Sequence record: LR756500.1
Reading direction: 5' to 3' (one strand)
Length of the DNA stretch: 64,000 bases
In this document: positions 493 through 33,453 of the stretch, piece by piece
Position numbering within the stretch: the stretch's first letter is position 1
How the letters are laid out: the number at the start of each line of letters is the position of its first letter
Notes under the pieces: model-generated
Told to the model about the DNA's origin: nothing
The model's input: only the letters and a program-made list of their open reading frames with translations
The model's database searches: none
Made by a program: the position numbers and the translations under genes

Positions 493-496
493 AATA

Positions 497-805: not shown

Positions 806-807
806 AA

Positions 808-1044
808 TTATAATCTAAAAGTTCTTAAACTATTCATTATCTCTTTAATTGTTTCTGGATTTGATCTAAGATGAGTTTTTACTCTTCTTTTAGAAATAAG
901 TTTTCTTGTATTATTTAAAATTATAAATTTATTTGCATAAAACATCATAAGTTCTTCAATATAATTAGGCACATGAATTTTAATACTATTTATTTCGTTA
1001 AATTCATTTATTGCTTTAGTTGCATTTAAAATATTATTTTCCAT
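808..1044 (-). CDS. hypothetical protein
   Basis: ORF track; operon context. Confidence 0.6.
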   Translation of the reverse strand: MENNILNATKAINEFNEINSIKIHVPNYIEELMMFYANKFIILNNTRKLISKRRVKTHLRSNPETIKEIMNSLRTFRL

Positions 1045-1121
1045 ATATTTAATTTTAATTATAGCAAATATAATTAATTAGTTTATAATTTAAAAATAAT
1101 CCTTAATAATTTATAGCTTAT

Positions 1122-1691
1122 TTATTTTATAATTTCATCTATAACTCCTAATCTAAGGGCTTGTTTACTATTCATAGTCCAATCAATTTTATGAGTGTAA
1201 ATTTTCTTAAGTTGTTTTTTAGATATTTTAGTTTTTTCAAGAGTTATTTTCTCAAGAAGTTTTTGTAATCTTTTTGTTTCATAAAACTCTTCTTCCATAT
1301 CTTTAGCTTTACCCCAGAAACCATTACTTATTTGATGATATAATGGTGTTGATAATTCATAACCAAATCTCTTATGTCCATTTATTAATATCATAAATCC
1401 GCACGACATAGCACAACCTGTAACAATAGTATAAATAGGTGTTTTACTTGTATTCATTATAGATAATAAACCAAAACATTGATATACCATTCCTCCATAA
1501 GAATCAATATAAATTTTAATTGGTTTACGTTTATATTTAACATAATCTATTGCATATACTTTGGTAAGACGATCGTCTTCTTCATTAATTTCAATTATTC
1601 TTTCAGTTAATTTACCTATTGATTCTTGATCAACTTGCTTATTAAAATACAAATTTCTACCTGTTGGAATTTCTAATTTATTTTCTGCCAT
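1122..1691 (-). CDS. clpP: ClpP-like serine protease (S14)
   Basis: IDSYGG, catalytic Ser in AMSCG, His in LYHQ, Asp in DWTM, C-terminal ALRLGVIDEI. Confidence 0.88.
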   Translation of the reverse strand: MAENKLEIPTGRNLYFNKQVDQESIGKLTERIIEINEEDDRLTKVYAIDYVKYKRKPIKIYIDSYGGMVYQCFGLLSIMNTSKTPIYTIVTGCAMSCGFMILINGHKRFGYELSTPLYHQISNGFWGKAKDMEEEFYETKRLQKLLEKITLEKTKISKKQLKKIYTHKIDWTMNSKQALRLGVIDEIIK

Positions 1692-1764
1692 AAAATTTTA
1701 AATTTATTATTTTATGGAAAATTAATATTTTGTTTAAATAAAATTTAATTAATTTAATCTTTAT

Positions 1765-1862
1765 TTCAACATTAAATATTTTTTTAATTTTTTTAACATT
1801 GATTGTCCTAAGGCATTCATATTTAATTAATTATATATTATTATTTATATATTTATGTTAGC
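1765..1862 (+). repeat. 98-bp inverted repeat copy A; candidate attI-like site ending in GTTAGC
   Basis: Reverse complement matches 13029-13126 at 96/98 positions; ends at the first cassette core site. Confidence 0.85.
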
Positions 1863-1869
1863 AACAATA

Positions 1870-2238
1870 CTACAAACCGTACTTCGATTTAAGTTTTTCT
1901 AATTGCTCCAACTCAATCTTTTTAATTCTTTCCTTTTCTTGTCTATCTCGTTCATCTTGTCTTTTTTGGTATTCAATTTCTTCTTGTTCACACGCTTGTT
2001 TGTATTCATTTTCAGAAATTAGACCCAAATCAACAAGTGGATGGTCGGTATTATCTTTACTATATTGGTTTATATTCACTTCATTTTTTGTGTATCCAAA
2101 TCCTTCTGTAATATCATTAACAACCAATACTGTAAATGTGTTATCTGTAAATTTTAACCATAAATCGCCACAATCTAATTTCAAATCAGAGATTGTTTTT
2201 CCTTTCAATTCATTGATATTCTGTATTTCATTTTTCAT
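1870..2238 (-). CDS. cassette 1 hypothetical protein
   Basis: ORF track; flanked by gttagcaacaatac / gtactgttgctaac. Confidence 0.75.
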   Translation of the reverse strand: MKNEIQNINELKGKTISDLKLDCGDLWLKFTDNTFTVLVVNDITEGFGYTKNEVNINQYSKDNTDHPLVDLGLISENEYKQACEQEEIEYQKRQDERDRQEKERIKKIELEQLEKLKSKYGL

Positions 2239-2272
2239 ATTATATAAATTAATCGTTTATAATCCGTACTGT

Positions 2273-2380
2273 TGCTAACACATTGTATATGTCGGTTTTG
2301 CCAATTGGCTTTTGTGCTTTTGTGCTTTGACTGAGAGTATGTGCGTGGCAAAACCGAACACATACAACCATTCGTTATAA
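2273..2380 (+). other. attC-like site S1
   Basis: TGCTAAC..GTTATAA; stem tgtatatgtcggttttgcca / tggcaaaaccgaacacataca with bulged bases. Confidence 0.8.
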
Positions 2381-2395
2381 GTAATAAAATAAAAA

Positions 2396-2560
2396 CTACT
2401 TACTACTATTAATATCCTTAATCAAAATTTGAATTTCTTCATTTTTATTTTCTAACTCTTTTTCAAATGCTTTTTGAAACTCAAACTTTTGTTCTTCACT
2501 TAACTCATTCAAATTTTGAATGTTAGTTTGTCTAATTTCTGCTTTAATTTTCTTTTCCAT
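2396..2560 (-). CDS. 54-aa cassette protein (MEKKIKAEIRQ...), absent from ORF track
   Basis: Translated by hand; fills the cassette between S1 and S2. Confidence 0.65.
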   Translation of the reverse strand: MEKKIKAEIRQTNIQNLNELSEEQKFEFQKAFEKELENKNEEIQILIKDINSSK

Positions 2561-2586
2561 AATTTTACTGTTTTTATTTTACATAC

Positions 2587-2708
2587 TTATAACAACAAAT
2601 ATAAAACATTGCTGATGTAGTTTCTATTTATATTATACGTTTAATTTCAAGTTTTGTTTCATTTATTTACATTCATGTTGCAACTTTTTATATTTGTAAT
2701 CGTTATAG
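2587..2708 (+). other. attC-like site S2
   Basis: TTATAAC..GTTATAG; stem acaaatataaaa..ttgc / gcaac..tttttatatttgt. Confidence 0.8.
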
Positions 2709-2717
2709 ATAATAAAA

Positions 2718-2936
2718 TTAAAAATAGTCATGACTATCTATAAATAACTCCTTATATGTTTCATCAGTAAAAGAAAATCCTCTACCATCAACCGTCATTT
2801 CTACAACTTGCATCACTTTTAAGTAATTAATTATTGTGTCAAGTTCGTCTTCTAATTCTTTACCTATTTTAAACATACTCATAGCTGCCATTATCTCACC
2901 AAGTCTTTCAATATTTTCTTTTACTTTCTCATCCAT
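2718..2936 (-). CDS. cassette hypothetical protein
   Basis: ORF track; bounded by gttatagata / tatctataac. Confidence 0.7.
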   Translation of the reverse strand: MDEKVKENIERLGEIMAAMSMFKIGKELEDELDTIINYLKVMQVVEMTVDGRGFSFTDETYKELFIDSHDYF

Positions 2937-2964
2937 ATTAATTAGTATTTTTAATTTTACATAT

Positions 2965-3049
2965 CTATAACAACAAATATAAGAAATAAATCTTACTTTG
3001 TCTATTTTTTAATGAAAAGATTTACTTCTCATATTTGCAACCGTTAGGC
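2965..3049 (+). other. attC-like site S3
   Basis: CTATAAC..GTTAGGC; stem caaatataagaaataaatc / gatttacttctcatatttg. Confidence 0.8.
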
Positions 3050-3053
3050 ATAA

Positions 3054-3245
3054 TTATACTCTACCACTAAGGTAGTATTCTATTTCACTCTTACTAAAAT
3101 CATCGGGCTTGTTTTTATAGTACTCCCTTAATTTTCCTTCGTGAACACCTTGTTCAAATGCCCATTTCATATCATCTAATGAATAACTACGCCTAACAAA
3201 GTATAAACGTAATGTTTTCAGTTTTTCAATCAATCTTTTTATCAT
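3054..3245 (-). CDS. cassette protein starting inside the S4 loop
   Basis: ORF track; LYFVRRS is encoded by the att arm. Confidence 0.7.
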   Translation of the reverse strand: MIKRLIEKLKTLRLYFVRRSYSLDDMKWAFEQGVHEGKLREYYKNKPDDFSKSEIEYYLSGRV

Positions 3246-3310
3246 ATTATTAAATTTTGTATTTCAAATTAAGTTCAGTTAAACACTACGTTTATACTCA
3301 ACTGTTATGG
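3191..3310 (+). other. attC-like site S4
   Basis: GCCTAAC..GTTATGG; stem agtataaacgta / tacgtttatact. Confidence 0.8.
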
Positions 3311-3311
3311 T

Positions 3312-3485
3312 TCATGCTAATCGCACAATTTGACGTTCATCTACTTGTGAAAAACAATTTTCATTATATGGTTGTCCATCGTACCAAAATGAACTACAGT
3401 CCCATCTCGCAACATTCCATCCTTCGTAACTAAAATTATTAGGGCTAAATAAGTATACCCAATAGTAACCTTCTTTTCTTTCCAT
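3312..3485 (-). CDS. 57-aa Trp-rich cassette protein (MERKEGYYWV...)
   Basis: Translated by hand; preferred over the overlapping track ORF 3341-3628. Confidence 0.65.
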   Translation of the reverse strand: MERKEGYYWVYLFSPNNFSYEGWNVARWDCSSFWYDGQPYNENCFSQVDERQIVRLA

Positions 3486-3531
3486 TTTATTTTTATTTTA
3501 AGTTTAACAATCTGATTAATAAAGCACGAAA

Positions 3532-3624
3532 CCATAACATTTGCTATATGTAACACGGCTGAAAAGTCCGTACTATTTTGAGAATGTCTGCTATGCCGTG
3601 CTACACATATCATTTTCGTTATGA
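3532..3624 (+). other. attC-like site S5
   Basis: CCATAAC..GTTATGA; stem tatgtaacacggc / gccgtgctacacata. Confidence 0.8.
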
Positions 3625-3810
3625 ACAATGCTTAACGTCTGCCAACGCTATGTCATGTCCACATTTTTTACATTTACCAACCATAATTAAGTGGTCGAAA
3701 GCATTGTTCATAACACCAAATAAATGAAATTTCTCTATTTCATCTATTGTCGGTAGTGCTTTTATTGTTACTTCTATACCACTTGGCAATTTTACTTTCA
3801 TATTTTTCAT
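3619..3810 (-). CDS. cassette protein reading through S6; CKKC motif
   Basis: ORF track; stop is the TAA of the core site; start uncertain. Confidence 0.45.
   Translation of the reverse strand: MKNMKVKLPSGIEVTIKALPTIDEIEKFHLFGVMNNAFDHLIMVGKCKKCGHDIALADVKHCS
3708..3758 (+). other. short degenerate attC-like site S6 (GTT changed to GGT)
   Basis: TCATAAC; stem taaatgaaat / atttcatcta; GGTAGTG. Confidence 0.55.
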
Positions 3811-3919
3811 AGTCTATACCCATAGAACAAACCTTTCGCTTCGCAACACTAACATCAGATATATTCAATTTTTTATTTGTATTATCCAAAGTTTCTTCTA
3901 AAATTTTACTCTTTTCCAT
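3740..3919 (-). CDS. 59-aa cassette protein (MEKSKILEETLDNTNKKLNISDVSVA...)
   Basis: Translated by hand; starts in the S7 loop. Confidence 0.65.
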   Translation of the reverse strand: MEKSKILEETLDNTNKKLNISDVSVAKRKVCSMGIDYEKYESKIAKWYRSNNKSTTDNR

Positions 3920-3964
3920 TTTATTAAATTTTGTGTTAGAACTACGTATATGTAATCATTATAG
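3847..3964 (+). other. degenerate attC-like site S7 (GTT changed to ATT)
   Basis: CACTAAC..ATTATAG; weak arm pairing. Confidence 0.55.
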
Positions 3965-3968
3965 CCAA

Positions 3969-4319
3969 TTAAAGCACTGAATCATAATTGCTGCCTCTAT
4001 CATCATAATCCCATTTAGAATCAAGCTCATAATATTCTTTTTTTGATTGTTGGTATTCGATTCCTTTTTGCAATTCTTTAATTTGAGAATTAAGTTTATC
4101 TATTTTATTTTGCCTTTGCTCTGAAATGTATTTTTGTGCATCATTAACTGTTTTGAAAAATTTGTCGGAAGTCATAGATAAGCATATTCTCCAATTATAC
4201 TCCGTACCAGCACTACGCAAAGACCTGACAAATGCGTAACTATCGGTTAATTTGACGCAATCTCTTTCCCATATTCTAACTAAATCATCCTTTACAATAT
4301 AAACTTTAAAAAACTCCAT
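3969..4319 (-). CDS. cassette hypothetical protein
   Basis: ORF track; between S7 and S8. Confidence 0.7.
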   Translation of the reverse strand: MEFFKVYIVKDDLVRIWERDCVKLTDSYAFVRSLRSAGTEYNWRICLSMTSDKFFKTVNDAQKYISEQRQNKIDKLNSQIKELQKGIEYQQSKKEYYELDSKWDYDDRGSNYDSVL

Positions 4320-4337
4320 ATCTATAAAATTAACTGA

Positions 4338-4467
4338 CTATAACCCGTGGTATGGTTAGTTGCCGTGTTAGTACTAAATTTAAGCGTTACTACCCGCTTG
4401 TAATTTTCTGTAATTTGATAGGAAAGTAGCCCGCAATCGGCAACTAACCATACAACCAACGTTATGA
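4338..4467 (+). other. attC-like site S8
   Basis: CTATAAC..GTTATGA; perfect 16-bp stem gtatggttagttgccg / cggcaactaaccatac. Confidence 0.85.
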
Positions 4468-4473
4468 TTAATT

Positions 4474-4653
4474 TTACTCAACCACTTCAAAGTCACCAAC
4501 ATTAATTGGGTGATATACACCCAACCCCTGACATATTGTAAATGTTCCATCTTCATTAAATCCTTGATATGGCTCATCCTCTTCAAATATATCACCACTT
4601 TTAAATGTTGTCATATACCCCTCATAATCTTTTAGTAATTTAATTTTTTTCAT
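4474..4653 (-). CDS. 59-aa cassette protein (MKKIKLLKDYEGY...)
   Basis: Translated by hand; preferred over the track ORF 4380-4598. Confidence 0.65.
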   Translation of the reverse strand: MKKIKLLKDYEGYMTTFKSGDIFEEDEPYQGFNEDGTFTICQGLGVYHPINVGDFEVVE

Positions 4654-4679
4654 ATTTTAATATTTAAGTAAAAAACTAA

Positions 4680-4773
4680 CCATAACAAGGTGTATAAAAC
4701 ATAACCTAATTACAAATTTTAAATTAACCACGGAACTATAATAGGTTATGTTTCATACACCTAACCGTTAGCG
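4680..4773 (+). other. attC-like site S9
   Basis: CCATAAC..GTTAGCG; stem aggtgtataaaacataaccta / taggttatgtttcatacacct. Confidence 0.85.
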
Positions 4774-4990
4774 GTAATTTAATAACAGTATTTTGAGCAT
4801 CTTCATAGCTTTCAAATATCTTATTACATCTTGGACAAGAACAACAACCGTCAACAACGGGTATAGCAAATAATTTTACTAAGTCAAATCGTAATTTTCC
4901 ACATATTTCTCCTGTCATTTTTATATAATCAAGATTATCGTTATCAATTTTTACATCACTTAATAATAAGTGTACTTCTTGTTCTGTCAT
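4736..4990 (-). CDS. cassette protein spanning the S10 arm and ending inside S9
   Basis: ORF track; FAIPVVDG and LPLTVRC are encoded by att arms. Confidence 0.6.
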   Translation of the reverse strand: MTEQEVHLLLSDVKIDNDNLDYIKMTGEICGKLRFDLVKLFAIPVVDGCCSCPRCNKIFESYEDAQNTVIKLPLTVRCMKHNLL

Positions 4991-5053
4991 ATTTATAAAT
5001 TTATTAGTTATTACTATTAATTCCGAACTGAGTATATCTGAGTGTCGTTATAT
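4849..5053 (+). other. degenerate long attC-like site S10
   Basis: CGTCAAC (degenerate)..GTTATAT. Confidence 0.45.
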
Positions 5054-5063
5054 GCAATAAAAA

Positions 5064-5198
5064 TTATTTTTTGGATATTTTATATAACATTATAAATCCT
5101 ATTAAAAAGTGATGGATGTTGTACAATTTGCCATTTCTATCAACTTCGCTACAAAAATATCCAAATCCTATTACAAATGGCAAAATCTTTATATTCAT
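5064..5198 (-). CDS. 44-aa cassette protein (MNIKILPFVIG...)
   Basis: Translated by hand; between S10 and S11. Confidence 0.5.
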   Translation of the reverse strand: MNIKILPFVIGFGYFCSEVDRNGKLYNIHHFLIGFIMLYKISKK

Positions 5199-5210
5199 AA
5201 TTTTTACAGT

Positions 5211-5340
5211 TTATAACAACAAATATAAGCAATTATTTTCATTACTTCCAAAATAAATGTTGTTTGTTAATATTAATTTTGTTCTTTTAATTAAGTTTCT
5301 ACTAATTTTACTCAAATGTATATACCTGCAGACGTTAGCT
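5211..5340 (+). other. hybrid attC-like site S11
   Basis: TTATAAC..GTTAGCT; left arm of S2/S3 type, right arm of S15 type. Confidence 0.65.
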
Positions 5341-5345
5341 GCCAT

Positions 5346-5537
5346 TTAAGGAAGCTCTGTAATAACATAGTTAATAGCCATGTTTATTTCTGTTTCAATT
5401 TTAAATCTATACCCATTAAGCTCATAAACATTTTCATCTTTCATTTTTTCTAAACTAAACTTTTGCAATAGTTCATAAATCTGCGAAAGTGTAAGATTAT
5501 TCACGTTGGCTTTTATGTTTAAGTTTATTGTCATCAT
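5346..5537 (-). CDS. cassette hypothetical protein
   Basis: ORF track; bounded by gttagctgccattt / aaatggtagctaac. Confidence 0.7.
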   Translation of the reverse strand: MMTINLNIKANVNNLTLSQIYELLQKFSLEKMKDENVYELNGYRFKIETEINMAINYVITELP

Positions 5538-5550
5538 AATAAAAAATGGT

Positions 5551-5636
5551 AGCTAACATGATATATAAGCCATACAATGTTAAGGTTTATACTAATTTGA
5601 TAGTGTCGGGTATGACTTATATACCCATTGTTAGAG
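5551..5636 (+). other. attC-like site S12
   Basis: AGCTAAC..GTTAGAG; stem tatataagccatac / gtatgacttatata. Confidence 0.8.
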
Positions 5637-5640
5637 TGCA

Positions 5641-5835
5641 TTATCTAAACACTCCTAAAAAATCTTTTAAGCAACTTTCGTTACATACGTAAAATATTTT
5701 ATTTCCCTTAAAATAACATTCTGGCACTTTCATTGCTTTATGCTTTTTAATTTGTTTTTTACAACTTTCACAATTAACGCACTCTAACAAAGTATTAGCG
5801 TTATTGCCTTTCTTGCTTTCTGATAAGTTTTCCAC
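5641..5835 (-). CDS. Cys-rich cassette protein starting in the S13 loop
   Basis: ORF track; NANTLLECV arm motif; CxxC..CxxxC. Confidence 0.65.
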   Translation of the reverse strand: MENLSESKKGNNANTLLECVNCESCKKQIKKHKAMKVPECYFKGNKIFYVCNESCLKDFLGVFR

Positions 5836-5902
5836 ATTTTATATTTTAATGTTGTTAATAATTGTTTGTGATTGCGTTAACTCCAATACTCGACCATTAG
5901 GT
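5782..5902 (+). other. degenerate attC-like site S13 (ATT core)
   Basis: CTCTAAC..ATTAGGT. Confidence 0.6.
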
Positions 5903-6091
5903 TCAATCATTAATTTGTTTTGAATCTTCTATCATATTTTTGATTCGTTCTTTGAATCTATGTTCGTATTCCTTATCAACTTCACCCAAGTCAGTTGTTT
6001 CAAGATATTTTTTAGGTAATCCTTTACCCATAGTTTCCTTGAGTTTATTTTGAAAATACTCAAGTTCTTCGTTTGTGTTTTTATTTTCCAT
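5903..6091 (-). CDS. cassette hypothetical protein
   Basis: ORF track; ATG start; between S13 and S14. Confidence 0.65.
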   Translation of the reverse strand: MENKNTNEELEYFQNKLKETMGKGLPKKYLETTDLGEVDKEYEHRFKERIKNMIEDSKQIND

Positions 6092-6133
6092 ATTTTATAT
6101 TTTTTTACAAAGGTAAAACAAATTAATGACAAA

Positions 6134-6187
6134 ACCTAACAAATGATAAACAACATTAAAACATTCGTTTATCTGCAACCGTTATAA
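6134..6187 (+). other. minimal 54-bp attC-like site S14
   Basis: ACCTAAC..GTTATAA; stem gataaac / gtttatc. Confidence 0.7.
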
Positions 6188-6197
6188 AACAGTTTGC

Positions 6198-6344
6198 TTA
6201 AAAAAGTTTTCCACATTTTATACATCTAACCAAATAAGCACCAACCTCAAACTTTTCAAATTCGTGTTTGCAAACAGATTTTATAACAGGTATATCCAAT
6301 TGCTTTTTTTGTTTTCTAAATAAACATTTTCACAATTTTTTCAT
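6198..6344 (-). pseudogene. cassette ORF with in-frame TGA at codon 5 (MKKL*KCLFRKQKKQLDIPVIKSVCKHEF...CIKCG)
   Basis: Translated by hand; TGA at 6330-6332. Confidence 0.5.
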
Positions 6345-6404
6345 CTTGTATTTCAATTTAATTTTTACTAATTTTACGCAACTATATACCTGCAGCCTTT
6401 ATAG
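6281..6404 (+). other. attC-like site S15 (TTT core)
   Basis: TTATAAC..TTTATAG; stem aggtatat..attgc / gcaactatatacct. Confidence 0.65.
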
Positions 6405-6605
6405 TGCATTAAGGAAGTCCTCAGCATCCTTCACACTAAAGCATTTTGTGAATTTACCTGTATTTTCATTCAACACTATTACAAAATCAACTGCTCCGTA
6501 ATTAAATGCCAATTTAGTTGCTTCAATATCAAACACACATAAAGCATTATACTTTGGTATTACGGGTTGACAATCTGAATATTTTTTATCTAAAATTCTT
6601 AACAT
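6399..6605 (-). CDS. cassette hypothetical protein
   Basis: ORF track; between S15 and S16. Confidence 0.65.
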   Translation of the reverse strand: MLRILDKKYSDCQPVIPKYNALCVFDIEATKLAFNYGAVDFVIVLNENTGKFTKCFSVKDAEDFLNAL

Positions 6606-6624
6606 AGTTTTAAGTATTAACTTA

Positions 6625-6719
6625 CTATAACAATGTGTATATGTAATGCAGCCAATAAGTTAATTGTAAATTGAAAGTATATGCAAGACAAACCGACATC
6701 ATACCGCCAGCCATTATAG
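6625..6719 (+). other. hybrid/degenerate attC-like site S16 (ATT core)
   Basis: CTATAAC..ATTATAG; right arm resembles S1. Confidence 0.55.
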
Positions 6720-6723
6720 CCAA

Positions 6724-6882
6724 TTAAAAAGTAACACCATTATCATATCCAACCTCTATTGATATATTTTCAATTTCAGTATTTAATATTTGTGCTATCT
6801 TTTCTTTTAGTTCGATTATCTTGGTTACATCAATCATTACATCTTTGTAAACAGAAATTGAAATTAGTTCTTTTTCATTCAT
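6724..6882 (-). CDS. 52-aa cassette protein (MNEKELISISVYKD...)
   Basis: Translated by hand. Confidence 0.55.
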   Translation of the reverse strand: MNEKELISISVYKDVMIDVTKIIELKEKIAQILNTEIENISIEVGYDNGVTF

Positions 6883-6931
6883 ATTATCTAAGCAAACATT
6901 CTCATATACTTAACCATTATAGATAATGAAA

Positions 6932-7222
6932 TTAAATATCCTTAAAAAGTCTTCTTGGTGCTACTAATCTTCTACCATCATCACATTTAATAATATATTC
7001 ACCATCAGGTTCTATAACAGTATCTAAAACATTATAAATATTACCAACTGTTATTGGAAAATTTGGGTTTGGATTTTCCGTACATAGAACTTGTTTAAGC
7101 ATAAACTTATTATTAAATGTTCCATAAATATCTGAATTAACTATTTTAATTTCACTATCTATAGCATCAGATATATGTAATTTTTCATCTTTTTTCATAA
7201 TACTATTTTTATTAGTTAACAA
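6932..7222 (-). CDS. distal cassette protein (KLHISDAIDS arm motif)
   Basis: ORF track; bounded by attatagata / tatctatagc; likely start near 7198. Confidence 0.65.
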   Translation of the reverse strand: MLTNKNSIMKKDEKLHISDAIDSEIKIVNSDIYGTFNNKFMLKQVLCTENPNPNFPITVGNIYNVLDTVIEPDGEYIIKCDDGRRLVAPRRLFKDI

Positions 7223-7228
7223 AACAAC

Positions 7229-7642
7229 TTAATACGCCTTGTTATGTTTGTACGCCCTTGTTTGATTATAGAGCATTTTCAATTCGATATGCTTTTCAAT
7301 ATCAATGTTTCTTTGTCCTATAAAATCGAGCAATCTAATAAATACGTCTGCAATTTCATCTTCAAAAGTATCCTTTACCTGAGTTCTGAAAATTTCCTCA
7401 AACTTTATCATATCGTTTTCTTTTGCTGCCAAATCTAAATCTTCTCGAATAGTTTTGCCGTCAATAATAAATTCAGCATCATCAATTTTGGCATATTGTC
7501 CTTTTCTATCAGCTTCCAAAGCCTCAGATAATTCAGAAACCATAAGCATTAATAAAGTACCTGTTTCTCTTGGTTCGTCCCAAAAACCCTTTGCCTTTGC
7601 TCTTTCATGAAAATGTTTTGCTAATTCGTTTAAATTATTCAT
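7229..7642 (-). CDS. MazG-like all-alpha NTP pyrophosphohydrolase
   Basis: LMVSELSEALEADR and EDEIADVFIRLLD motifs. Confidence 0.85.
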   Translation of the reverse strand: MNNLNELAKHFHERAKAKGFWDEPRETGTLLMLMVSELSEALEADRKGQYAKIDDAEFIIDGKTIREDLDLAAKENDMIKFEEIFRTQVKDTFEDEIADVFIRLLDFIGQRNIDIEKHIELKMLYNQTRAYKHNKAY

Positions 7643-7664
7643 ATTATTTTATCTTTTAAGTTTT

Positions 7665-8081
7665 TTAAAAATTTATTACAGACAGATCTAAATAATATTG
7701 TGGATCTGCATAGTCTTGAATTTCAGAAACTAATCCATTAAATTTCATTTTAAAATCTCTATTTATATTTATAAGGTAAACAATTCTTCCATGTGGTTTT
7801 ATGGAATACCTATCTCCTTCGATATTTTCAACTGAGCGATTTTGCATTAAAACATATCCACCAATTGTTAATGCAATATCATCAATCATTTTTTCTTTAT
7901 CCCCAATTTCTTCATGCCAAGGTATTGCAACTAAATCTAAATCTCTATTCATTGAGCCATGCACAATAATATTATATCCATATTTTAAACCTATTTCTTT
8001 TATTATTTCAAAGTAAAATGAATATAAATTTGGTTTAGCATGAATTGGTTTAATGTCTGTTATAGGATTTGTTGTATTCAA
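7665..8081 (-). CDS. conserved hypothetical protein, nucleotidyltransferase-like motif
   Basis: VHGSMNRDLDLVAIPW (GS..D.D). Confidence 0.5.
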   Translation of the reverse strand: MNTTNPITDIKPIHAKPNLYSFYFEIIKEIGLKYGYNIIVHGSMNRDLDLVAIPWHEEIGDKEKMIDDIALTIGGYVLMQNRSVENIEGDRYSIKPHGRIVYLININRDFKMKFNGLVSEIQDYADPQYYLDLSVINF

Positions 8082-8175
8082 ATATTTATTAAATAAAATT
8101 TTATTATTAAATTATATAACCAAAATTAATTATGTTTATAATTTAATCAATTTTTATATTTTTAATTTTACATAC

Positions 8176-8209
8176 TTATAACAACTATTTTTACACTTAA
8201 TCGTTAGTA
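8176..8209 (+). other. collapsed attC-like remnant
   Basis: TTATAAC..GTTAGTA with the loop deleted; ttttacatacttataacaac is identical to 2577-2596. Confidence 0.45.
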
Positions 8210-8268
8210 ACAATATAAAAATAAAGTTTGTAGAATAACCGATACAGACTCAATATTATTAAAAGAAT

Positions 8269-8700
8269 TTAAATAAAATCATATTTCATAATTATCTTAT
8301 TATCGATTTCTTTAACAACAGTCCATCCCATTTTTAAATGATATTCTTTTGCAAAAACTGTATCTAAAAATATAGTTTTATATCCTAATAATTTTGCATA
8401 TTCAAATCTTTTTTCAGTTAACATCAATCCATATCCATTACCTCTATATTCTGGTTCAACCCATAACAATAAATTCCAGGGAGATATAGTCCTATCTATT
8501 TCATTAATAGTATCAAATAATCCACAACCTATAGGTTTATCATCTATTATCAATACATAACAAACTGAATCAGATTCATTATTTAAATACCTTCTAATCT
8601 CACTTAAACTATATTCATCATCAACTTGCCAACGTTCTTTCATAATAGATGAAACATAATTAATATACATGTGAGTTAATTTTTCTATTTTAATTTCCAT
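8269..8700 (-). CDS. GNAT family N-acetyltransferase
   Basis: VEPEYRGNGYG acetyl-CoA motif; GYKTIFLDT; YHLKMGW. Confidence 0.85.
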   Translation of the reverse strand: MEIKIEKLTHMYINYVSSIMKERWQVDDEYSLSEIRRYLNNESDSVCYVLIIDDKPIGCGLFDTINEIDRTISPWNLLLWVEPEYRGNGYGLMLTEKRFEYAKLLGYKTIFLDTVFAKEYHLKMGWTVVKEIDNKIIMKYDFI

Positions 8701-10121
8701 TCAAATTTATAATTGCCTGTTCCAAAACATCTATANNNNNNNNNNNNNNNNNNNNNNNNNNNNNNNNNNNNNNNNNNNNNNNNNNNNNNNNNNNNNNNNN
8801 NNNNNNNNNNNNNNNNNNNNNNNNNNNNNNNNNNNNNNNNNNNNNNNNNNNNNNNNNNNNNNNNNNNNNNNNNNNNNNNNNNNNNNNNNNNNNNNNNNNN
8901 NNNNNNNNNNNNNNNNNNNNNNNNNNNNNNNNNNNNNNNNNNNNNNNNNNNNNNNNNNNNNNNNNNNNNNNNNNNNNNNNNNNNNNNNNNNNNNNNGGCT
9001 CCACCAACAACCGAAGTATTTAATTTATTAGCAAACCGTAAAAGCTCCCATTCATTTTCTTTAGCAACTTGATTTAAATTTTTACGTAAGGATCCGAAGG
9101 TCATTAATGATACTAACTCACCTTCATAATATAAACCTAATTTAATAGCAGCATTAGTATTGCCCTGTAAATGGTTCCTATTTAAAAATTCTCTACTATC
9201 ACCAGAATTAACGGTTTTAATTACACATTTTCTAGCATACACTTTATCAGTAGATAAATTTAATAAATTCTTTATTCTTGATTTTACTATATCTCTTTTG
9301 TTATACCAAACATCTTCCCATATATGTATTAAATTAATTCCCAATTCTTTGCATCTATTACTTTTATCTATATGATATTCTTTAGGTTTATTAAATTCAT
9401 TATGCCAATATACTCCATTATGTTCAAATGCTATATTTTTATCTTCAATATAAATATCAAGTTCTCTATTTTTTAATTCTTTTTTAGAATTAATTCTAAA
9501 TGGTTTTAAATAAATGTCTTTTATCCAATCTATTAATTCTATTTCAGAATTACTTTTTCCGTGATTAGGATTACATTTTAAACATGGATTAATATTTATA
9601 TTTATTCTTCTATATAATAATTGAGAATCTATTATTGATATACTTTTACATTCAACACATTCTATTTTTATTTTTTGTTGATCATCCCATTCTATTATTT
9701 TAATTTTATCTTTTAATTTTTCTTTAGCAAAAGGAAAATAATATTTATCTTTAAAATAATTTGATTGTGTTATATGTTGTACTCCATATCTTTTTAGAAC
9801 TGTTATTCTTGTTCTTTTTTCTTTTAAAACTATTGCACATTTTCTACTACAGCTAGAAGAATAACCAGGCATTATACCCATAAATTTAGATGAAGGTATT
9901 TTATTACCACATACTTCACATTTTGGAATTTCAGTTTTATCATGTAATGCATGATAAAGTTTTTCTTTAAAAGACGTTAATTTTAGATTATTATTTATAG
10001 AATATTTTTCTATTTCTAATAATAGATTAGGATAATTATTTTTAAAAAATTCAATTCTAGTAGTACTAGATGTAAGTTTTCCGTTTTTTATTAATATTTT
10101 ATTTAAATCATTTGATAACAT
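8685..10121 (-). CDS. Hef/Vsr-like endonuclease with Zn ribbons and a C-terminal Mom-like GNAT domain (87 codons of N)
   Basis: ELDIYI..IAFEHNGVYWH; LIHIWED; YARKC; NHLQG; WELLRFANKLNTSVVGGA. Confidence 0.7.
   Translation of the reverse strand: MLSNDLNKILIKNGKLTSSTTRIEFFKNNYPNLLLEIEKYSINNNLKLTSFKEKLYHALHDKTEIPKCEVCGNKIPSSKFMGIMPGYSSSCSRKCAIVLKEKRTRITVLKRYGVQHITQSNYFKDKYYFPFAKEKLKDKIKIIEWDDQQKIKIECVECKSISIIDSQLLYRRINININPCLKCNPNHGKSNSEIELIDWIKDIYLKPFRINSKKELKNRELDIYIEDKNIAFEHNGVYWHNEFNKPKEYHIDKSNRCKELGINLIHIWEDVWYNKRDIVKSRIKNLLNLSTDKVYARKCVIKTVNSGDSREFLNRNHLQGNTNAAIKLGLYYEGELVSLMTFGSLRKNLNQVAKENEWELLRFANKLNTSVVGGAXXXXXXXXXXXXXXXXXXXXXXXXXXXXXXXXXXXXXXXXXXXXXXXXXXXXXXXXXXXXXXXXXXXXXXXXXXXXXXXXXXXXXXXYRCFGTGNYKFEWKLK
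8736..8996. other. assembly gap or masked sequence, 261 N
   Basis: Run of N; the length preserves the reading frame. Confidence 0.95.
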
Positions 10122-10159
10122 TTAATTATATGGTTAATTATTATTATGTTTAATAAAAT

Positions 10160-11038
10160 TTAAACATAATCACCTTCCTGTATTTCAGGTAACTCTCCCA
10201 TCTTATTTCTATACAATAATGTAATCATCGGTAAATTTACCCATCTTAAATCCTTCTCAACTAATTGATTTTTAATACGTTCAAGAATGTCCCTGTCACT
10301 TCCCCGAGGTTCGCTGCGTACTGGTGAAGTAAGAAATTGCTCTCTTACATTTCTATATCTTAAATCCTTAAATTCCTTCAAATCCCAACAAAATGTTGAA
10401 TGCCAACTTTCTGTTATATGAGAAATATTATTCCCCCCTATATGTTTAACAACTCCTCTTTCTGGTCTACAATATGTATCTGTTCCTGTTTTATATCTTT
10501 TTATTATAGCTGTCGAAGAAAAGAATTTTGCTTTAGGATATCTAGTTATTGCCTTAGCCATATATTCTAGATGGTTAGGAAGCCATATATCATCGTGATC
10601 TAAACGACAAATAAAATTTACACCATCCCTTACTGCTTTATCAATAGCTATATTTGCAGCAACATCAGACCCTGAATGCCAAAGATCTGCCCCCCTGAAT
10701 CGGATCCTTTCACCTGGCAGTTCCAGATTTTCATATACGATTTTTGAGTATTCGAATGATTCAACTAAAGGCTTGATTTCATTATCACTTTCATAGTCAT
10801 CACCCATTAGATAAATTTTGTAGTTTTGGTATGATTGGTTTTTGATAGATTGAAGAGCTTCTTGTAATCTCATAGGAGTAGTACCATCGCTTCTTTTATA
10901 GGTAGCAACTATAATACCAAATCTTATATTTGTTCTGTGTTCTATTTTTTTGAATTTATCTATTTTATCCGATAAATCATTTTGTTTATTTTGATCTTCT
11001 TGATTAAAATTTTGAAAATTTTCTAATAAGGTGTCCAT
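10160..11038 (-). CDS. glycosyltransferase family 2
   Basis: IIVATY, SIKNQSYQNYKI, LDHDDIWLPNHLE (DxD). Confidence 0.88.
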   Translation of the reverse strand: MDTLLENFQNFNQEDQNKQNDLSDKIDKFKKIEHRTNIRFGIIVATYKRSDGTTPMRLQEALQSIKNQSYQNYKIYLMGDDYESDNEIKPLVESFEYSKIVYENLELPGERIRFRGADLWHSGSDVAANIAIDKAVRDGVNFICRLDHDDIWLPNHLEYMAKAITRYPKAKFFSSTAIIKRYKTGTDTYCRPERGVVKHIGGNNISHITESWHSTFCWDLKEFKDLRYRNVREQFLTSPVRSEPRGSDRDILERIKNQLVEKDLRWVNLPMITLLYRNKMGELPEIQEGDYV

Positions 11039-11054
11039 AAAAATATTATTTGAA

Positions 11055-11063
11055 TATATATTT
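11055..11063 (-). promoter_or_regulatory. candidate late promoter AAATATATA
   Basis: Same motif lies upstream of genes with head-targeting-like N-termini. Confidence 0.45.
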
Positions 11064-11082
11064 GGAATTTTAATTTTATTTT

Positions 11083-11102
11083 AAACTTTTTTATTATATT
11101 TA
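11083..11102 (+). promoter_or_regulatory. candidate early promoter (..TTATTATATTTA) driving the right cassette array
   Basis: Recurrent motif seen more than 15 times upstream of plus-strand operons. Confidence 0.6.
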
Positions 11103-11202
11103 AATTTAATAATATTTAGTTATATGAATCAAAATTTAAAAATATTAATAAAATGAGAACAATAAAGGCACAGAAGACTTAATTACTGGTATAATTATTG
11201 AA

Positions 11203-11358
11203 ATGAAAAACGAAGACAACTTTGAAAGAAAAGCTGCACAGCGAATAATCGAAGCACTAACAGATGAAAATAATTTGAATATACCCCCAGTTATCGTTTC
11301 AATTTGCGATGGTCTTTTGTTTGAATGTACTGATAGAGAAACAATACATAACGAATGA
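11203..11358 (+). CDS. 51-aa protein with arm motif NLNIPPVIVS
   Basis: Translated by hand; half att site GTTATCG at 11290. Confidence 0.5.
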   Translation: MKNEDNFERKAAQRIIEALTDENNLNIPPVIVSICDGLLFECTDRETIHNE

Positions 11359-11479
11359 TGCGTTTATTCTCGTTGCCGTATTAGGAGCAGAAATTATTAA
11401 CCATAAAATAAACACAATATGAAAAAAGGAACTTCAAATAAGCAGAAAGCAGGCAATAGAATTAAACGCAATGTTATAA
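11346..11479 (-). other. attC-like site R1
   Basis: ACATAACG..GTTATAA; stem tgcgtttattctcgttgcc / ggcaatagaattaaacgca. Confidence 0.8.
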
Positions 11480-11646
11480 AATTGTTGCCCGACCGGAGAA
11501 TTTATGATGAATACACATTTATAATTGGAAGTATGCAACACGGAACATCCTACATGGGTAAATCGGACGAAACTATAAAACACCACGACAATATAATCGC
11601 ATGGCTTAAAAAACGTAGAGAGGAGTTTAAGGGCAATGTTTTATAA
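11419..11646 (+). CDS. cassette protein starting in the R1 loop
   Basis: ORF track; stop is the TAA of the R2 core. Confidence 0.7.
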   Translation: MKKGTSNKQKAGNRIKRNVIKLLPDRRIYDEYTFIIGSMQHGTSYMGKSDETIKHHDNIIAWLKKRREEFKGNVL

Positions 11647-11773
11647 CGGACGGCGGTTGGCTTTCGTTGCCGATGCTCGATTAACGACAAATGATTATTA
11701 ATAGTAAAAATTTAAAATTATGCAGACAGATTCTAAAAACCAAATAGGCAATGAAGCTAATACCATGTTATGT
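11641..11773 (-). other. attC-like site R2
   Basis: TTATAACG..GTTATGT; stem ttggctttcgttgcc / ggcaatgaagctaa. Confidence 0.75.
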
Positions 11774-11994: not shown

Positions 11995-12109
11995 GGCTAA
12001 CGGTTGCAAATATAAAACGTTGCAACATGAATGTAATTAAATGAAACAAAACTTGAAAAAATGCTCGAATAACCACGGATGCCCAACTGTTTTATACCAT
12101 ATGTTAGCG
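11995..12109 (-). other. attC-like site R3
   Basis: GGCTAACG..GTTAGCG; first ~60 bp nearly identical to the reverse complement of the S2 right half. Confidence 0.75.
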
Positions 12110-12145
12110 GTAGTGATTTTTTAACTTATTAATATTTAACGATTT

Positions 12146-13033
12146 ATGAAAACAAAAAGATTTGATAGTTCAGAAGGTAATGTTTGGAAATATGTATTTG
12201 ACTTTGAAAATGCAGTTGCCGAAGCGGTACTTTACAAATATGAAAACTTTTACAAAAGGACTGTACTTTGCGTGAGTGTGCAAAGTGGATGCCCTGTTGG
12301 TTGCAAATTTTGCGGAACTGGCAAAAAGTTTATTAGAAACCTTACAAACTTAGAAATAGTTGCACAGGTTAAACATTGCTTAAAAGACATGAATATTGAA
12401 AATGTTAATTCGGCTAGTGATCGTTTCCAAATAATGTTTATGAGTATGGGTGAACCTACTTTAAATATTGATAATGTAATAACGGCAATAAAGGATTTAA
12501 ACAACTTATATCCAAATGCTGAATTACTTATTTCAACTATGGGGGCAAAAAACAATACCGCTTTTGAAAAACTGTTAAAAGTAAGTATTGAAATACAAAA
12601 GGTTGGTTTGCAATTTTCAGTACATGAAGCATTTGAAGAAAAAAGAAACCAATTAATATCATTTAAAAATAAATTGAATTTACGTGAAATGCGTGATTTT
12701 GGCATTGAGTGGAATAGGCAAACAAAACGCCCTGTATATGTGAATTATTGCATTGGAGAAACAAACCAAAGCAATGAAGAGATGGATAGGCTTAAAGACT
12801 TATTTAGCCCTGCTCTTTTCAATTTTACATTTTCGGTTATTTGCTCTTCTGATGAAAACATGAAAGATAAAGGATATAGAGAACTGAACAAGATAAACAC
12901 AATTACTTCATCATTTGTTGAATGTGGTTATAATGTTCGAGTTTTCGACCCTGCTGGTCAAGATGATATTGGGGGCGGGTGCGGACAATTATGGTATGTA
13001 CAAAACTGGATGCGTGACCATCATTACCGCTAA
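12146..13033 (+). CDS. rlmN: RlmN/Cfr-family radical SAM RNA methyltransferase, short form, cassette-borne
   Basis: LCVSVQSGCPVGCKFC, MSMGEP, QFSVH, DIGGGCGQL. Confidence 0.85.
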   Translation: MKTKRFDSSEGNVWKYVFDFENAVAEAVLYKYENFYKRTVLCVSVQSGCPVGCKFCGTGKKFIRNLTNLEIVAQVKHCLKDMNIENVNSASDRFQIMFMSMGEPTLNIDNVITAIKDLNNLYPNAELLISTMGAKNNTAFEKLLKVSIEIQKVGLQFSVHEAFEEKRNQLISFKNKLNLREMRDFGIEWNRQTKRPVYVNYCIGETNQSNEEMDRLKDLFSPALFNFTFSVICSSDENMKDKGYRELNKINTITSSFVECGYNVRVFDPAGQDDIGGGCGQLWYVQNWMRDHHYR

Positions 13034-13126
13034 CATAAATATATAAATAATAATATATAATTAATTAAATATGAATGCCTTAGGACAATCAATGTTAATA
13101 AAATTTAAAAAATATTTAATGTTGAA
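13029..13126 (-). repeat. 98-bp inverted repeat copy B; candidate attI-like site
   Basis: 96/98 match to the reverse complement of 1765-1862. Confidence 0.85.
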
Positions 13127-13150
13127 AAATTATTTAATTTTATAAAATAA

Positions 13151-13801
13151 ATGGAATATAACGATAAAAATGGATTAGAATTAATAGCTGAATTAGCTAA
13201 AGTTAGTACTGATAAGCTAATGAATTTAACTATTTTAATACTAAGTAGTAATAAATTGACTTCTATACCAAAAGAGATAGGATTACTTACTAATTTAAGA
13301 GAATTACGTTTATCCAATAATGAATTAACATCTGTACCAAAAGAGATAGGAAATTTGGTAAATTTACAACATTTACATTTAAATAGTAATAAATTAACTT
13401 CTATACCATTAGAAATATTTAATCTTATAAAATTAACTAAATTATTATTATATAGTAATAAATTGACTTCTATACCAAAAGAGATAGGAAATTTAATAAA
13501 TTTACAGCGTTTATTTTTAAGTTATAATGCATTGACTTCATTACCTAAAGAGATAGGAAATTTGGTAAATTTATGTGAATTACTATATACAAATACTAAG
13601 ATGGTTTCAATACCTATTGAGTTAGTTAAGTTAAATGTTTTTCCAAAGTTAGATTTATCAGAATTAACTCTGCCGTTATGGGCTGAATTATTTCAAGAAG
13701 ATAAATTTAAAGTTATTAAGCATAAAGATTTTCCAAAAGATTTAAGAAATCATCCATGGTTTATTGATGTAGCTTATGCAGATGATTTTGGACTTATTTA
13801 A
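13151..13801 (+). CDS. leucine-rich repeat protein
   Basis: About six 23-aa repeats LxLxxNxLTSIPKEIGNLxNL; C-terminus ADDFGLI. Confidence 0.9.
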   Translation: MEYNDKNGLELIAELAKVSTDKLMNLTILILSSNKLTSIPKEIGLLTNLRELRLSNNELTSVPKEIGNLVNLQHLHLNSNKLTSIPLEIFNLIKLTKLLLYSNKLTSIPKEIGNLINLQRLFLSYNALTSLPKEIGNLVNLCELLYTNTKMVSIPIELVKLNVFPKLDLSELTLPLWAELFQEDKFKVIKHKDFPKDLRNHPWFIDVAYADDFGLI

Positions 13802-14351: not shown

Positions 14352-15500
14352 TTATTCTATATTTGGATAATTAAAAAGTTTATTTTGATAGTTTTTAAGA
14401 ATAAGATTTCCATTTTCATCTTTACCTTGATAGTATTCAGGAAGAATAGGAATTTTACCTCCTCCACCTGGAGCATCAATTACAAAGGTAGGTATAGCAT
14501 AGCCTGAAGTATTACCTCTAAGATTAAACATTATTTCTATTCCTTTTTCGATTGAGGTTCTAAAATGTTCTGAACCTAGAATTGGATCACATTGATATAA
14601 ATAGTACGGTCTAACTCTAACTTTAAGTAATTCATGAAATAATTTTTTAAGAATTAATGAGTCATCATTAATTCCTTTAAGTAATACCGTTTGAGATCCT
14701 AATGGAATTCCAGCATTTGCTAATAAGTTGCAAGCTTGTTTTACTTCAGGAGTAATTTCATCTGGATGAGTAAAATGTATACTCATAAAAAGAGGATGAT
14801 ATTTTTGTAGAATATTTATTAGTTTTTTGTTTATTCTTTGTGGAAGTATAACTGGAACTTTGGTTCCAATTCTTATTATTTCAATATGTTTGATATTTCT
14901 AATAGTTGATAATAAATAATCAAGTTGTGAATCAGGTAAAGTTAATGGATCACCGCCAGAAATTATTACATCTCTTATTTCAGTATGTTCTCGCAAATAA
15001 TTAAAAGCAGATTCCCAATTATTTAAATTTTTTTCTTTTGCTACAATATGAGAACGTGTACAATATCTACAATATGTTGCACAAAAATCTGTTGCTAAAA
15101 ATAAAACTCTATCTGGATATCGATGTATAATATTAGGTACCGGATTATCTTCATTTTCATTTAATGGATCTGATAATTCACCCTCATTTATATAATATTC
15201 ATTTACAATCGGAATAACGCTTTTTCTTAATGATTGCAATGAATTATTTTTATCTATTAAGCTAGAATAATAAGGTGTTATTCTTATAGGTAATGAATCT
15301 TTATTATTATCATTTATAGATTTTTCATTATCATTTAAATTAAAAAAATCATTTAATTGTTTAATGTTTGTAATACTATTTTTTATTTGCCATCGCCAGT
15401 CATTCCACTGTTCTTTTGATGTATTAGGAAAATTTTCTTTTAAATATTCTATTGATTTTTCACTAGGTTCTATAAGTGAGATATCATCATTTTTGTCCAT
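14352..15500 (-). CDS. kamA: KamA family radical SAM (lysine 2,3-aminomutase-like)
   Basis: WNDWRWQ, HRYPDR, CATYCRYCTR, SGGDPL, QTVLLKGIND, PYYLYQCD, PGGGGK. Confidence 0.93.
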   Translation of the reverse strand: MDKNDDISLIEPSEKSIEYLKENFPNTSKEQWNDWRWQIKNSITNIKQLNDFFNLNDNEKSINDNNKDSLPIRITPYYSSLIDKNNSLQSLRKSVIPIVNEYYINEGELSDPLNENEDNPVPNIIHRYPDRVLFLATDFCATYCRYCTRSHIVAKEKNLNNWESAFNYLREHTEIRDVIISGGDPLTLPDSQLDYLLSTIRNIKHIEIIRIGTKVPVILPQRINKKLINILQKYHPLFMSIHFTHPDEITPEVKQACNLLANAGIPLGSQTVLLKGINDDSLILKKLFHELLKVRVRPYYLYQCDPILGSEHFRTSIEKGIEIMFNLRGNTSGYAIPTFVIDAPGGGGKIPILPEYYQGKDENGNLILKNYQNKLFNYPNIE

Positions 15501-18797: not shown

Positions 18798-18854
18798 TTC
18801 TAAATTTTTATTTTTAAAACTTTTTTATTATATTTACTTTTAAAATAAAAAAAT

Positions 18855-23381: not shown

Positions 23382-23547
23382 AAGAATAAAATTTGAAATT
23401 TATATTTTTGAATTATATGTAAATTTAATAAAAAAGTTTAAAAAATAAAAAAATTTTAATACATTCTTTTTCAAAAAATTATTTGATAACTAATATTTTA
23501 AATTTAAAACTTTATTATTATATTTACTTTTAATTATATAAAAATTA

Positions 23548-31895: not shown

Positions 31896-32023
31896 TGCTT
31901 AAAATATTAATTTATTTTATATATCATCAAGCCTTTATAGTTTTATATAAAATTTAGTTATATTTTTAAATTAAAAACTTTAATATTATATTTAATTATT
32001 AAATTTATATAAATTATAACAAA

Positions 32024-33421: not shown

Positions 33422-33453
33422 CATATTATTTAATTTAAATCTGTTATTATACT

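Follow-up and report, generated by a model that had tools for sequence, protein, structure and literature searches.

A 98-bp inverted repeat caps two back-to-back arrays of small gene cassettes in a huge phage, and it matches the site that in related phages joins such arrays to a dedicated recombinase gene. This points to an integron-like gene-capture system in phages. We consider each copy of the repeat to be the terminal junction module, the attI-equivalent end, of a cassette array, with a probability of roughly 0.6. The attI-like reading is largely supported by position and sequence. However, the genome has no recombinase, so the two sites are orphans and their activity is unproven.

The window analysed here comprises the last 64,000 nucleotides of LR756500.1, an unannotated 462-kb record of an uncultured phage from a groundwater metagenome with a GC content of about 23%. 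For genome-wide checks a near-identical 429-kb IMG/VR record (G001) was used, in which the letters corresponding to the N run 8736-8996 of the window were masked. A Bacteroidota host is only suggested, by the hosts of the cultured relatives and by the lack of Shine-Dalgarno-like sequences before the two flanking genes, as judged by eye. The features discussed below are the following.

1765-1862 (-), repeat copy A, reading GCTAAC first on the minus (transcribed) strand and ending near GTTGAA, between the last cassette of the left array and the ClpP-like gene
13029-13126 (+), repeat copy B, between the last cassette of the right array (radical SAM) and the LRR gene; its first 5 nt overlap the end of the radical-SAM gene, including the stop codon
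13031-13047 (+), array-terminal junction motif TAAC-N4-ATATATAAA in copy B; the same motif in copy A is at 1844-1860 on the minus strand
13071-13145 (+), short ORF of 24 codons in copy B, with 19 codons in copy A at 1761-1820 on the minus strand; a possible relic of the 5' end of a recombinase gene
12059-13034 (+), cassette adjoining copy B, with the radical-SAM ORF 12146-13033 (Pfam radical SAM), flanked by the 18-nt inverted repeat 12100-12117 / 13020-13037
1855-2280 (-), cassette adjoining copy A, with the ORF 1870-2238 (phrog_33653), flanked by the inverted repeat 1857-1871 / 2265-2279
2276-2377 (-), TAAC-hairpin-GTTA unit, fold z -3.9, 38.6 bits with the covariance model R1 described below
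2590-2705 (-), TAAC-hairpin-GTTA unit whose 5' half is about 90% identical to 11998-12058 in the other array
2968-3046 (-), TAAC-hairpin-GTTA unit, fold z -6.1, R1 68.7 bits; the same unit occurs in another contig of the source metagenome
3194-3307 (-), TAAC-hairpin-GTTA unit
3535-3621 (-), TAAC-hairpin-GTTA unit
4341-4464 (-), TAAC-hairpin-GTTA unit; about 90% identical copies lie in five other contigs from three samples, with unlike flanks
4683-4770 (-), TAAC-hairpin-GTTA unit, fold z -6.4, R1 65.1 bits
5554-5633 (-), TAAC-hairpin-GTTA unit; weaker model hits lie at 5785-5899, 6137-6184 and 6628-6716
11349-11476 (+), hairpin unit of the right array
11644-11770 (+), hairpin unit of the right array
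11998-12106 (+), chimeric hairpin unit upstream of the radical-SAM ORF; its 5' half resembles 2645-2705 and its 3' half resembles contig L092
1122-1691 (-), ClpP-like protease gene, a backbone gene downstream of copy A (PF00574, E 2e-25; phrog_94), with about 100 relatives at 54-67% identity in viral contigs
13151-13801 (+), leucine-rich-repeat (LRR) gene downstream of copy B, with LRR Pfam families and 69-nt internal repeats
11039-11202, divergence point of the two arrays

The repeat itself was examined first. Window 1765-1862 and the reverse complement of 13029-13126 are 96/98 identical, and blastn gave 98% over 99 nt (E 4e-45), so that the observation of the initial annotation was confirmed. 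Weaker, gapped similarity runs on to 1743 and 13148 (120 nt, 92%). It is the strongest dispersed repeat in the window, and G001 holds exactly these two copies, all other matches being short AT-rich noise. On the transcribed strand each copy begins with GCTAAC and identity ends at its G, at 1862/1863 in copy A and at 13029/13028 in copy B. In copy B the core overlaps the TAA stop (13031-13033) of the radical-SAM gene, whereas in copy A the neighbouring ORF stops 8 nt away, at 1870. The sequence AAATATATA is present at 13037-13045. The repeat showed no significant fold (z -0.6 and -1.4; 48 and 22 of 200 shuffles fold as well), whereas the array units folded at z -3.6 to -6.4 with 0 of 200 shuffles as good.

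As had been set out beforehand as a check, we searched for further copies. A core-pattern scan of IMG/VR found none, and the JGI metagenome scan found only the genome's own contig and a 22-nt match inside an unrelated coding region (contigs L099 and L101), which we treat as chance. With blastn against 86 related loci nothing was found. One 151-nt soil contig matches 1762-1860. No strain of this phage with a different cassette next to the repeat could be found.

Between the copies lie two divergent arrays of small genes. All ORFs from 88 to 11038 are on the minus strand and those from 11203 on are mostly on the plus strand, so both arrays are transcribed outward from about 11100 toward the repeat copies. 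No paralogy was found among the small ORFs. The intergenic regions follow a grammar on the coding strand, which is X'-nnTAAC, a 3-5-nt spacer, a long stem-loop, a 0-2-nt spacer, then GTTAnn-X and the next ORF. A genome-wide scan for TAAC...GTTA pairs enclosing a stem found strong units only at the eight minus-strand and three plus-strand positions listed above, which all lie between the two repeat copies. An Rfam search gave nothing relevant, and tRNA scans found none in the window or in the first unit of contig L128, whose loop has T-arm-like strings.

To test whether the units form a structural family, a covariance model (R1) was built from 20 short units that we selected from the window and from four other phage contigs (L128, L129, L132 and L134). 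In the window it gave 15 hits, only within 2276-6716 (-) and 11998-12106 (+) and all between the copies, whereas it found nothing in the other 409 kb of the genome. It found 47 sites in 303 kb of window plus recombinase loci, against 0 in 1.2 Mb of unrelated phage loci. The repeat itself is not a hit. Covariation is strong: 97% of cells are paired against 70% in shuffles, there are 290 double-change cells against 92, 0 of 500 shuffles reach this, and slid controls are 29-56% paired; the A4 alignment is, however, fitted to the model. In an independent MAFFT alignment 16 of 24 pairs are compensatory. Several G.U pairs are conserved on the coding strand, which hints that the ORF-flanking repeats and hairpins may also act in RNA.

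Many ORFs are bracketed by their own inverted repeat of 10-25 nt that begins with GTTAnn and ends with nnTAAC, and the nn positions covary. An antisense promoter as the explanation for these ORF-flanking repeats was rejected, because the repeat starts at GTTA and excludes the -7-like box, as judged by eye.

We then asked whether the cassettes that touch the 98-bp repeat are mobile. Window 12059-13034 is 90% identical at the nucleotide level to contigs L092/L125 over exactly this span; it is the only similarity within 20 kb and ends at GCTAAC(A). Window 1855-2280 is 95.8% identical to contig L147 over exactly this span, bounded by GTTAGC directly after a T and by the end of GCTAACAT; the flanks differ beyond these, and a different hairpin lies upstream. 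The next cassette in L092 was considered as a homologue of the window ORF 1870-2238 because of similar flanks, but this was rejected by BLASTP. Elsewhere, L129 6890-7365 equals L134 2622-3097, which is a hairpin plus its downstream ORF, bounded after AAC on both sides. Hairpins alone are also shared between phages (L128/L134, L129/L132, L126/L133), and other contigs of the source sample and of two soil samples share exactly the hairpin units 2966-3047, 3193-3308 and 4341-4465 at about 90% identity. Breakpoints therefore sit at the conserved AAC or GTT cores, although not always at the same one. One cassette moved with its upstream hairpin, one with half of it and one without it, and homologous recombination between similar units may therefore contribute.

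The link to a recombinase was found in L092, which carries a 266-aa tyrosine recombinase 1.4 kb downstream of its radical-SAM cassette. Searches with this protein and with an alignment of relatives gave nine contigs that encode the clade at 35% identity or more and have upstream DNA (L125, L126, L128, L129 and L132-L136). Every one has an array of the same units directly upstream, on the same strand, with co-directional small ORFs, whereas more distant recombinases have none. By blastp of ORFs, these phages share few genes with the phage of the window, and tblastx of the recombinase loci against the genome gave only results swamped by AT-rich noise, which were discarded. The recombinase is Xer-like. 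It aligns end to end with archaeal XerA, but with IntI4 only up to residue 171-181.

The junction between array and recombinase gene was compared in close relatives. L128 and L129 have 94-99% identical backbones but unrelated arrays, and homology stops after GCTCAAC and resumes at CTAAC, 55 nt before the recombinase start codon. Cultured flavobacterial phages (Cellulophaga Ingeline; Polaribacter Freya and Leef) encode the same clade. Freya_1 and Freya_10 are identical except for a 4.9-kb, 12-gene array inserted exactly at such a junction, between TTTACAAC and ACCCCTATAAC, about 50 nt upstream of the integrase gene. Other Freya isolates hold intermediate sets of cassettes. The isolation paper does not mention this. 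R1 gave no hits in the Ingeline, Freya and Leef loci; by eye these phages have the same grammar with (C/T)AAC and GTT(A/G) cores and other loop sizes.

In all nine arrays the last TAAC is followed by N4-ATAT(A)T(A) and a short AT-rich stretch up to the recombinase start codon. TAAC and ATAT.T. are invariant across these nine array ends and both window copies, which read TAAC-ATAA-ATATATAAAT, and the exact motif occurs only twice in the 429-kb genome, at the two copies. From TAAC, the repeat is 54/96 identical, without gaps, to the junction of L132 plus the start of its recombinase gene, against a control mean of 32.7 and a control maximum of 50 over 5810 offsets. In both, an ATG lies 36 nt after TAAC. 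In L132 it starts the recombinase gene, and in the window it starts the 24-codon or 19-codon ORF with six in-register identities, including the L..NY of the conserved N-terminal motif. This similarity to the recombinase N-terminus is short (22 codons, 6 identities) and lies in very AT-rich DNA. L135, from a 334-kb phage contig, shows the same phenomenon, since a 91-nt repeat starting at TAAC ends two arrays, with one copy next to the recombinase gene and the other not.

To find a recombinase in the phage itself, we searched with Pfam profiles. No tyrosine recombinase (PF00589) was found in G001 or in the full LR756500.1 record, and no serine (PF00239) or Y1 HUH (PF01797) recombinase in G001.

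The interpretation in the initial annotation, two primary insertion sites facing each other where the first cassette of each array abuts a hairpin-less site, was thus partly supported. The shared junction motif, the in-register alignment, the change of cassette content at this junction in relatives and the mobility of both adjacent cassettes speak for it. Three points are not supported or need changing. The sites are orphans, probably carrying a relic of the recombinase gene's first codons. The view of AAATATATA as a late-promoter-like motif is not supported, since it is part of the conserved junction motif, the 9-mer is not over-represented in the genome and promoter scans do not exceed shuffles. 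Finally, the system differs from a canonical integron in its recombinase and in cassette polarity.

In our view the arrays are built from modules joined at conserved AAC and GTT cores. There are two kinds, ORF modules flanked by their own inverted repeat (GTTAnn-X ... X'-nnTAAC), and hairpin modules, which are structured elements with TAAC and GTTA paired at the base, an asymmetric internal loop and a covarying stem of about 20 bp. In related phages the small Xer/IntI-like recombinase gene sits directly after the last TAAC, separated from it by a short, non-palindromic, AT-rich site. The 98-bp module would be this terminal site plus, probably, the first 20 or so codons of a lost recombinase gene, duplicated in inverted orientation after the truncation or copied from one array end to the other. 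By analogy with integrons, the recombinase would act on folded hairpin sites and on the terminal site, exchanging strands at the AAC/GTT cores. A circularised cassette would rebuild a long hairpin in which X' and X extend the basal stem, and that would explain the ORF-flanking repeats. Our analysis establishes the repeat and its boundaries, the hairpin family and its covariation, the linkage of array and recombinase in relatives, the shared terminal motif and the mobility of both adjacent cassettes. It is inferred, from assembled contigs and without an observed recombination event, that the recombinase acts on these sites, that cassettes enter at the terminal site, and that in this genome any activity needs a recombinase supplied in trans, for example by a co-infecting phage, or else the sites are relics. 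Supply in trans is plausible, because other phages with such units are present in the same sample and both adjacent cassettes have close copies in other phages.

The best surviving alternative, although unlikely, is that the repeat is only a duplicated regulatory intergenic region (promoter and 5' leader) that drives the ClpP-like and LRR genes, its match to array ends in other phages reflecting shared AT-rich promoter sequence. Both copies lie directly upstream of a gene in the right orientation, in relatives the terminal region is also the upstream region of the recombinase gene and must carry its expression signals, and this genome carries other conserved 35-55-nt intergenic repeat families. 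However, identity starts exactly at the TAAC core of the last cassette and not at a promoter-like distance from the genes, and in copy A the high-identity part ends about 70 nt before the ClpP start codon. Sigma-70-type scans found nothing above shuffles, and in Freya and in L128/L129 the same junction is where cassette content changes.

It is less likely still that the copies serve as substrates for homologous recombination that flips the 11.2-kb segment between them. The copies are 98-120 bp long, 92-98% identical, inverted and 11,166 nt apart, and either orientation would preserve the outward transcription and place a cassette 3' end against a repeat followed by a backbone gene. In the source run the repeat collapses into a single 70-nt unitig of higher depth. 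Both assemblies have the same orientation, although contig data cannot show isomers, and no invertase was found in G001. Among the Logan contigs the single skip joint (1862 to 2645) is the other array's contig mapping onto both repeats and not a deletion. Flipping does not explain the shared junction motif or the in-register match to a recombinase start, and could be a side effect rather than the function. A small peptide or RNA product is very unlikely, because although both copies hold an ATG-initiated ORF, the two substitutions between them are both non-synonymous, the C-termini differ in length, and there is no Rfam match and no significant fold.

More broadly, but only tentatively, the arrays and their caps may belong to an undescribed, phage-borne, integron-like gene-capture system, consisting of a small Xer-like recombinase without the IntI domain, covarying AAC/GTT hairpin sites, ORF modules with their own flanking inverted repeats and a conserved terminal insertion site. 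It would be spread across phages from about 40 kb to over 300 kb, including cultured Polaribacter and Cellulophaga phages, and huge phages could keep recombinase-less arrays with orphan terminal sites that are serviced in trans. Literature searches found no description of a phage Xer-like recombinase linked to such arrays, although the literature covered was incomplete and prior description cannot be excluded. How phages gain and shuffle their many small accessory genes is a long-standing question, for which illegitimate or homologous recombination and the PeSL motifs of T4-like phages are the known answers. A site-specific platform with its own recombinase clade would be a distinct mechanism. 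It would explain hyperplastic regions, provide a way to find mobile phage accessory genes, which may include anti-defence genes, by their flanks alone, and bear on the evolutionary link between Xer recombinases and integron integrases. The idea is directly testable, because cultured Polaribacter phage isolates already differ only by such arrays. For this window, it turns an odd inverted repeat into a recognisable landmark, the recombinase-proximal end of each array.

The closest known systems are integrons, with an IntI integrase, an attI site and attC-bearing cassettes. As in integrons, arrays of mostly single small ORFs are separated by imperfect hairpin sites whose only invariant bases are AAC and GTT at the base of the stem, a tyrosine recombinase gene sits next to one array end behind a short non-palindromic site, and array content differs between otherwise near-identical genomes exactly at that site. 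An empty platform exists (Freya_1), comparable to an In0 element, and the ORFs are flanked by the complementary core halves, as in integrated cassettes. For attI, a non-palindromic site at the integrase-proximal array end where cassettes are inserted, position, terminal motif and lack of a fold agree, and insertion at this point is seen in Freya_1 versus Freya_10, whereas for the window's copies an insertion role is inferred from position and sequence. The units correspond to attC-type sites, which are imperfect hairpins of 57-141 nt with conserved AAC...GTT at the base, an unpaired spacer and a variable loop; by our own model they are 66-190 nt, mostly 78-128 nt, with TAAC and GTTA paired at the base, an internal loop and a covarying stem of about 19 pairs. 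Two defining integron features are absent. The recombinase of related arrays (266-277 aa) lacks the IntI-specific insertion and scores below the cut-offs of TIGR02249 (145 against 265 bits) and NF040815. The cassettes do not follow the order of an ORF followed by its attC, with crossover only between G and TT of R' and transcription away from intI. Instead, array boundaries lie right after AAC at both ends, the ORFs are co-directional with the recombinase gene and transcribed toward it, not away from a Pc promoter, and in two of three informative comparisons the hairpin travels with the downstream ORF, at least in part, whereas in one it does not travel at all. For this reason we do not count the system as an integron. 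In addition, the ORF-flanking inverted repeats are 10-25 nt rather than 7 nt, the extra bases sit on the 5' arm of the coding strand, and the elements are carried by phages, including virulent-looking and huge ones.

CALINs, clusters of two or more attC sites lacking an integrase, were reported in 17 phages, including a Polaribacter phage, and some phage attC sites were shown to recombine with IntI1 (Qi et al. 2023, PMC9892861). With attC defined by our own model, the window fits this description, since at least 11 units lie within 10 kb and the genome has no recombinase. That work treats the sites as ordinary integron parts and does not link them to a phage-encoded Xer-like recombinase or to a terminal site. 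Invertible segments of the Gin/Hin/Cin type, with a serine invertase gene and short crossover sites in inverted orientation, and IS200/IS605-type hairpin transposons, with a Y1 HUH transposase and subterminal hairpins, do not apply, since no PF00239 and no PF01797 match, respectively, was found in G001.

The PeSL promoter-early stem-loop cassettes of T4-type phages (Arbiol et al. 2010, PMC2839356; Comeau et al. 2014, PMC4122927) likewise involve small genes of unknown function in a hyperplastic region, each bracketed by a conserved intergenic motif with a stem-loop that mediates modular shuffling. Some window units carry, as judged by eye, a TAnnTTTG-like box in the 3' arm. PeSL cassettes are defined by a repeated early promoter plus stem-loop motif of near-constant sequence flanking ORFs; in the window only a subfamily (2563-2607, 2941-2985, 8152-8196) shares sequence with a -7-like box, whereas most units covary rather than repeat. 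PeSL shuffling is reportedly attributed to homologous recombination between repeated motifs, with no dedicated recombinase or terminal site. Here most units covary in structure rather than being conserved in sequence, and they are linked to a recombinase gene in relatives. With Xer/dif-type and phage integrase systems, the arrays of relatives share a recombinase that belongs to the Xer-like simple tyrosine recombinases. From annotation, Cellulophaga phage Ingeline carries a second, larger integrase elsewhere. The linkage of the Xer-like recombinase is to an array of hairpin-separated cassettes rather than to a single dif or attP site.

A few further features were observed in the window.

8685-10121, a homing/HNH-endonuclease-like ORF (phrog_3339, E 7e-73) located just upstream of the left array; it contains the masked N stretch at 8736-8996.
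12146-13033, a radical-SAM gene near copy B, which is a mobile cassette.
14352-15500, a second radical-SAM gene near copy B, which is lysine-2,3-aminomutase-like (LAM_C, E 5e-16) and lies on the opposite strand outside the arrays.
63851-63999, a near-perfect tandem repeat at the very end of the window, which is also the end of the GenBank record.

The self-matches of the tandem repeat are offset by 35, 53, 71, 89 and 107 nt, so the period appears to be about 18 nt. The near-identical 429-kb record G001 differs from the window by about 94 nt somewhere before position 63000. In addition, a family of intergenic repeats of 35-55 nt with the core AAACTTTTTTATTATATTTA was found at the positions 11066-11114, 18802-18843, 23496-23547, 31964-32016, 33387-33430, 37375-37430, 38037-38085, 44716-44769, 45700-45754 and 54198-54256, with identities of 84-100%. 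This is probably a phage promoter family and is unrelated to the hairpin units.

The hairpin units themselves showed regularities in their loops and in their lengths. Many of the loops share the motif AAACTT(T)(A/C)AAATT, as seen for example in columns 38-52 of the unit alignment A3 and in the window at 2645-2660. The conservation of a loop sequence suggests a protein-binding or promoter element in addition to the stem. When the lengths of the units were compared across the loci, two size classes of about 78-93 nt and about 116-128 nt were observed, with few units in between. In the phage contig L128, the first unit of the array (8149-8276) has two GGTTCGAnTCC strings in its loop that are like tRNA T-arms, but no tRNA was found there with ARAGORN.

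Matches to parts of the window were also observed in metagenomes. In the two soil metagenome runs X3 and X4, short contigs were 97-99% identical to parts of 4886-5963, showing that a close relative of this groundwater phage is present at low coverage in two soil studies. A 22-nt exact match to the GC-richer core of the 98-bp repeat (ATATGAATGCCTTAGGACAATC) was found at L099 3582-3603 and L101 1525-1546, inside a coding region of an unrelated metagenome contig and in the same reading frame (YMNALGQS). We judge this match, for which we have no explanation, to be due to chance.

Among the cultured phages, three pieces of the array of Polaribacter phage Freya_10, corresponding to 38% of it at 97% identity, occur in the records of the related species Danklef at about 38-41 kb. 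The features annotated under the match are all hypothetical proteins and no integrase is among them. In Cellulophaga phage Ingeline_1 (L142), which also has a second, larger integrase gene, a GTGTTAGC...GCTAACAC inverted repeat with only 28 nt between the arms is located at 8859-8926, just upstream of the small integrase gene, and looks like an ORF module without an ORF.
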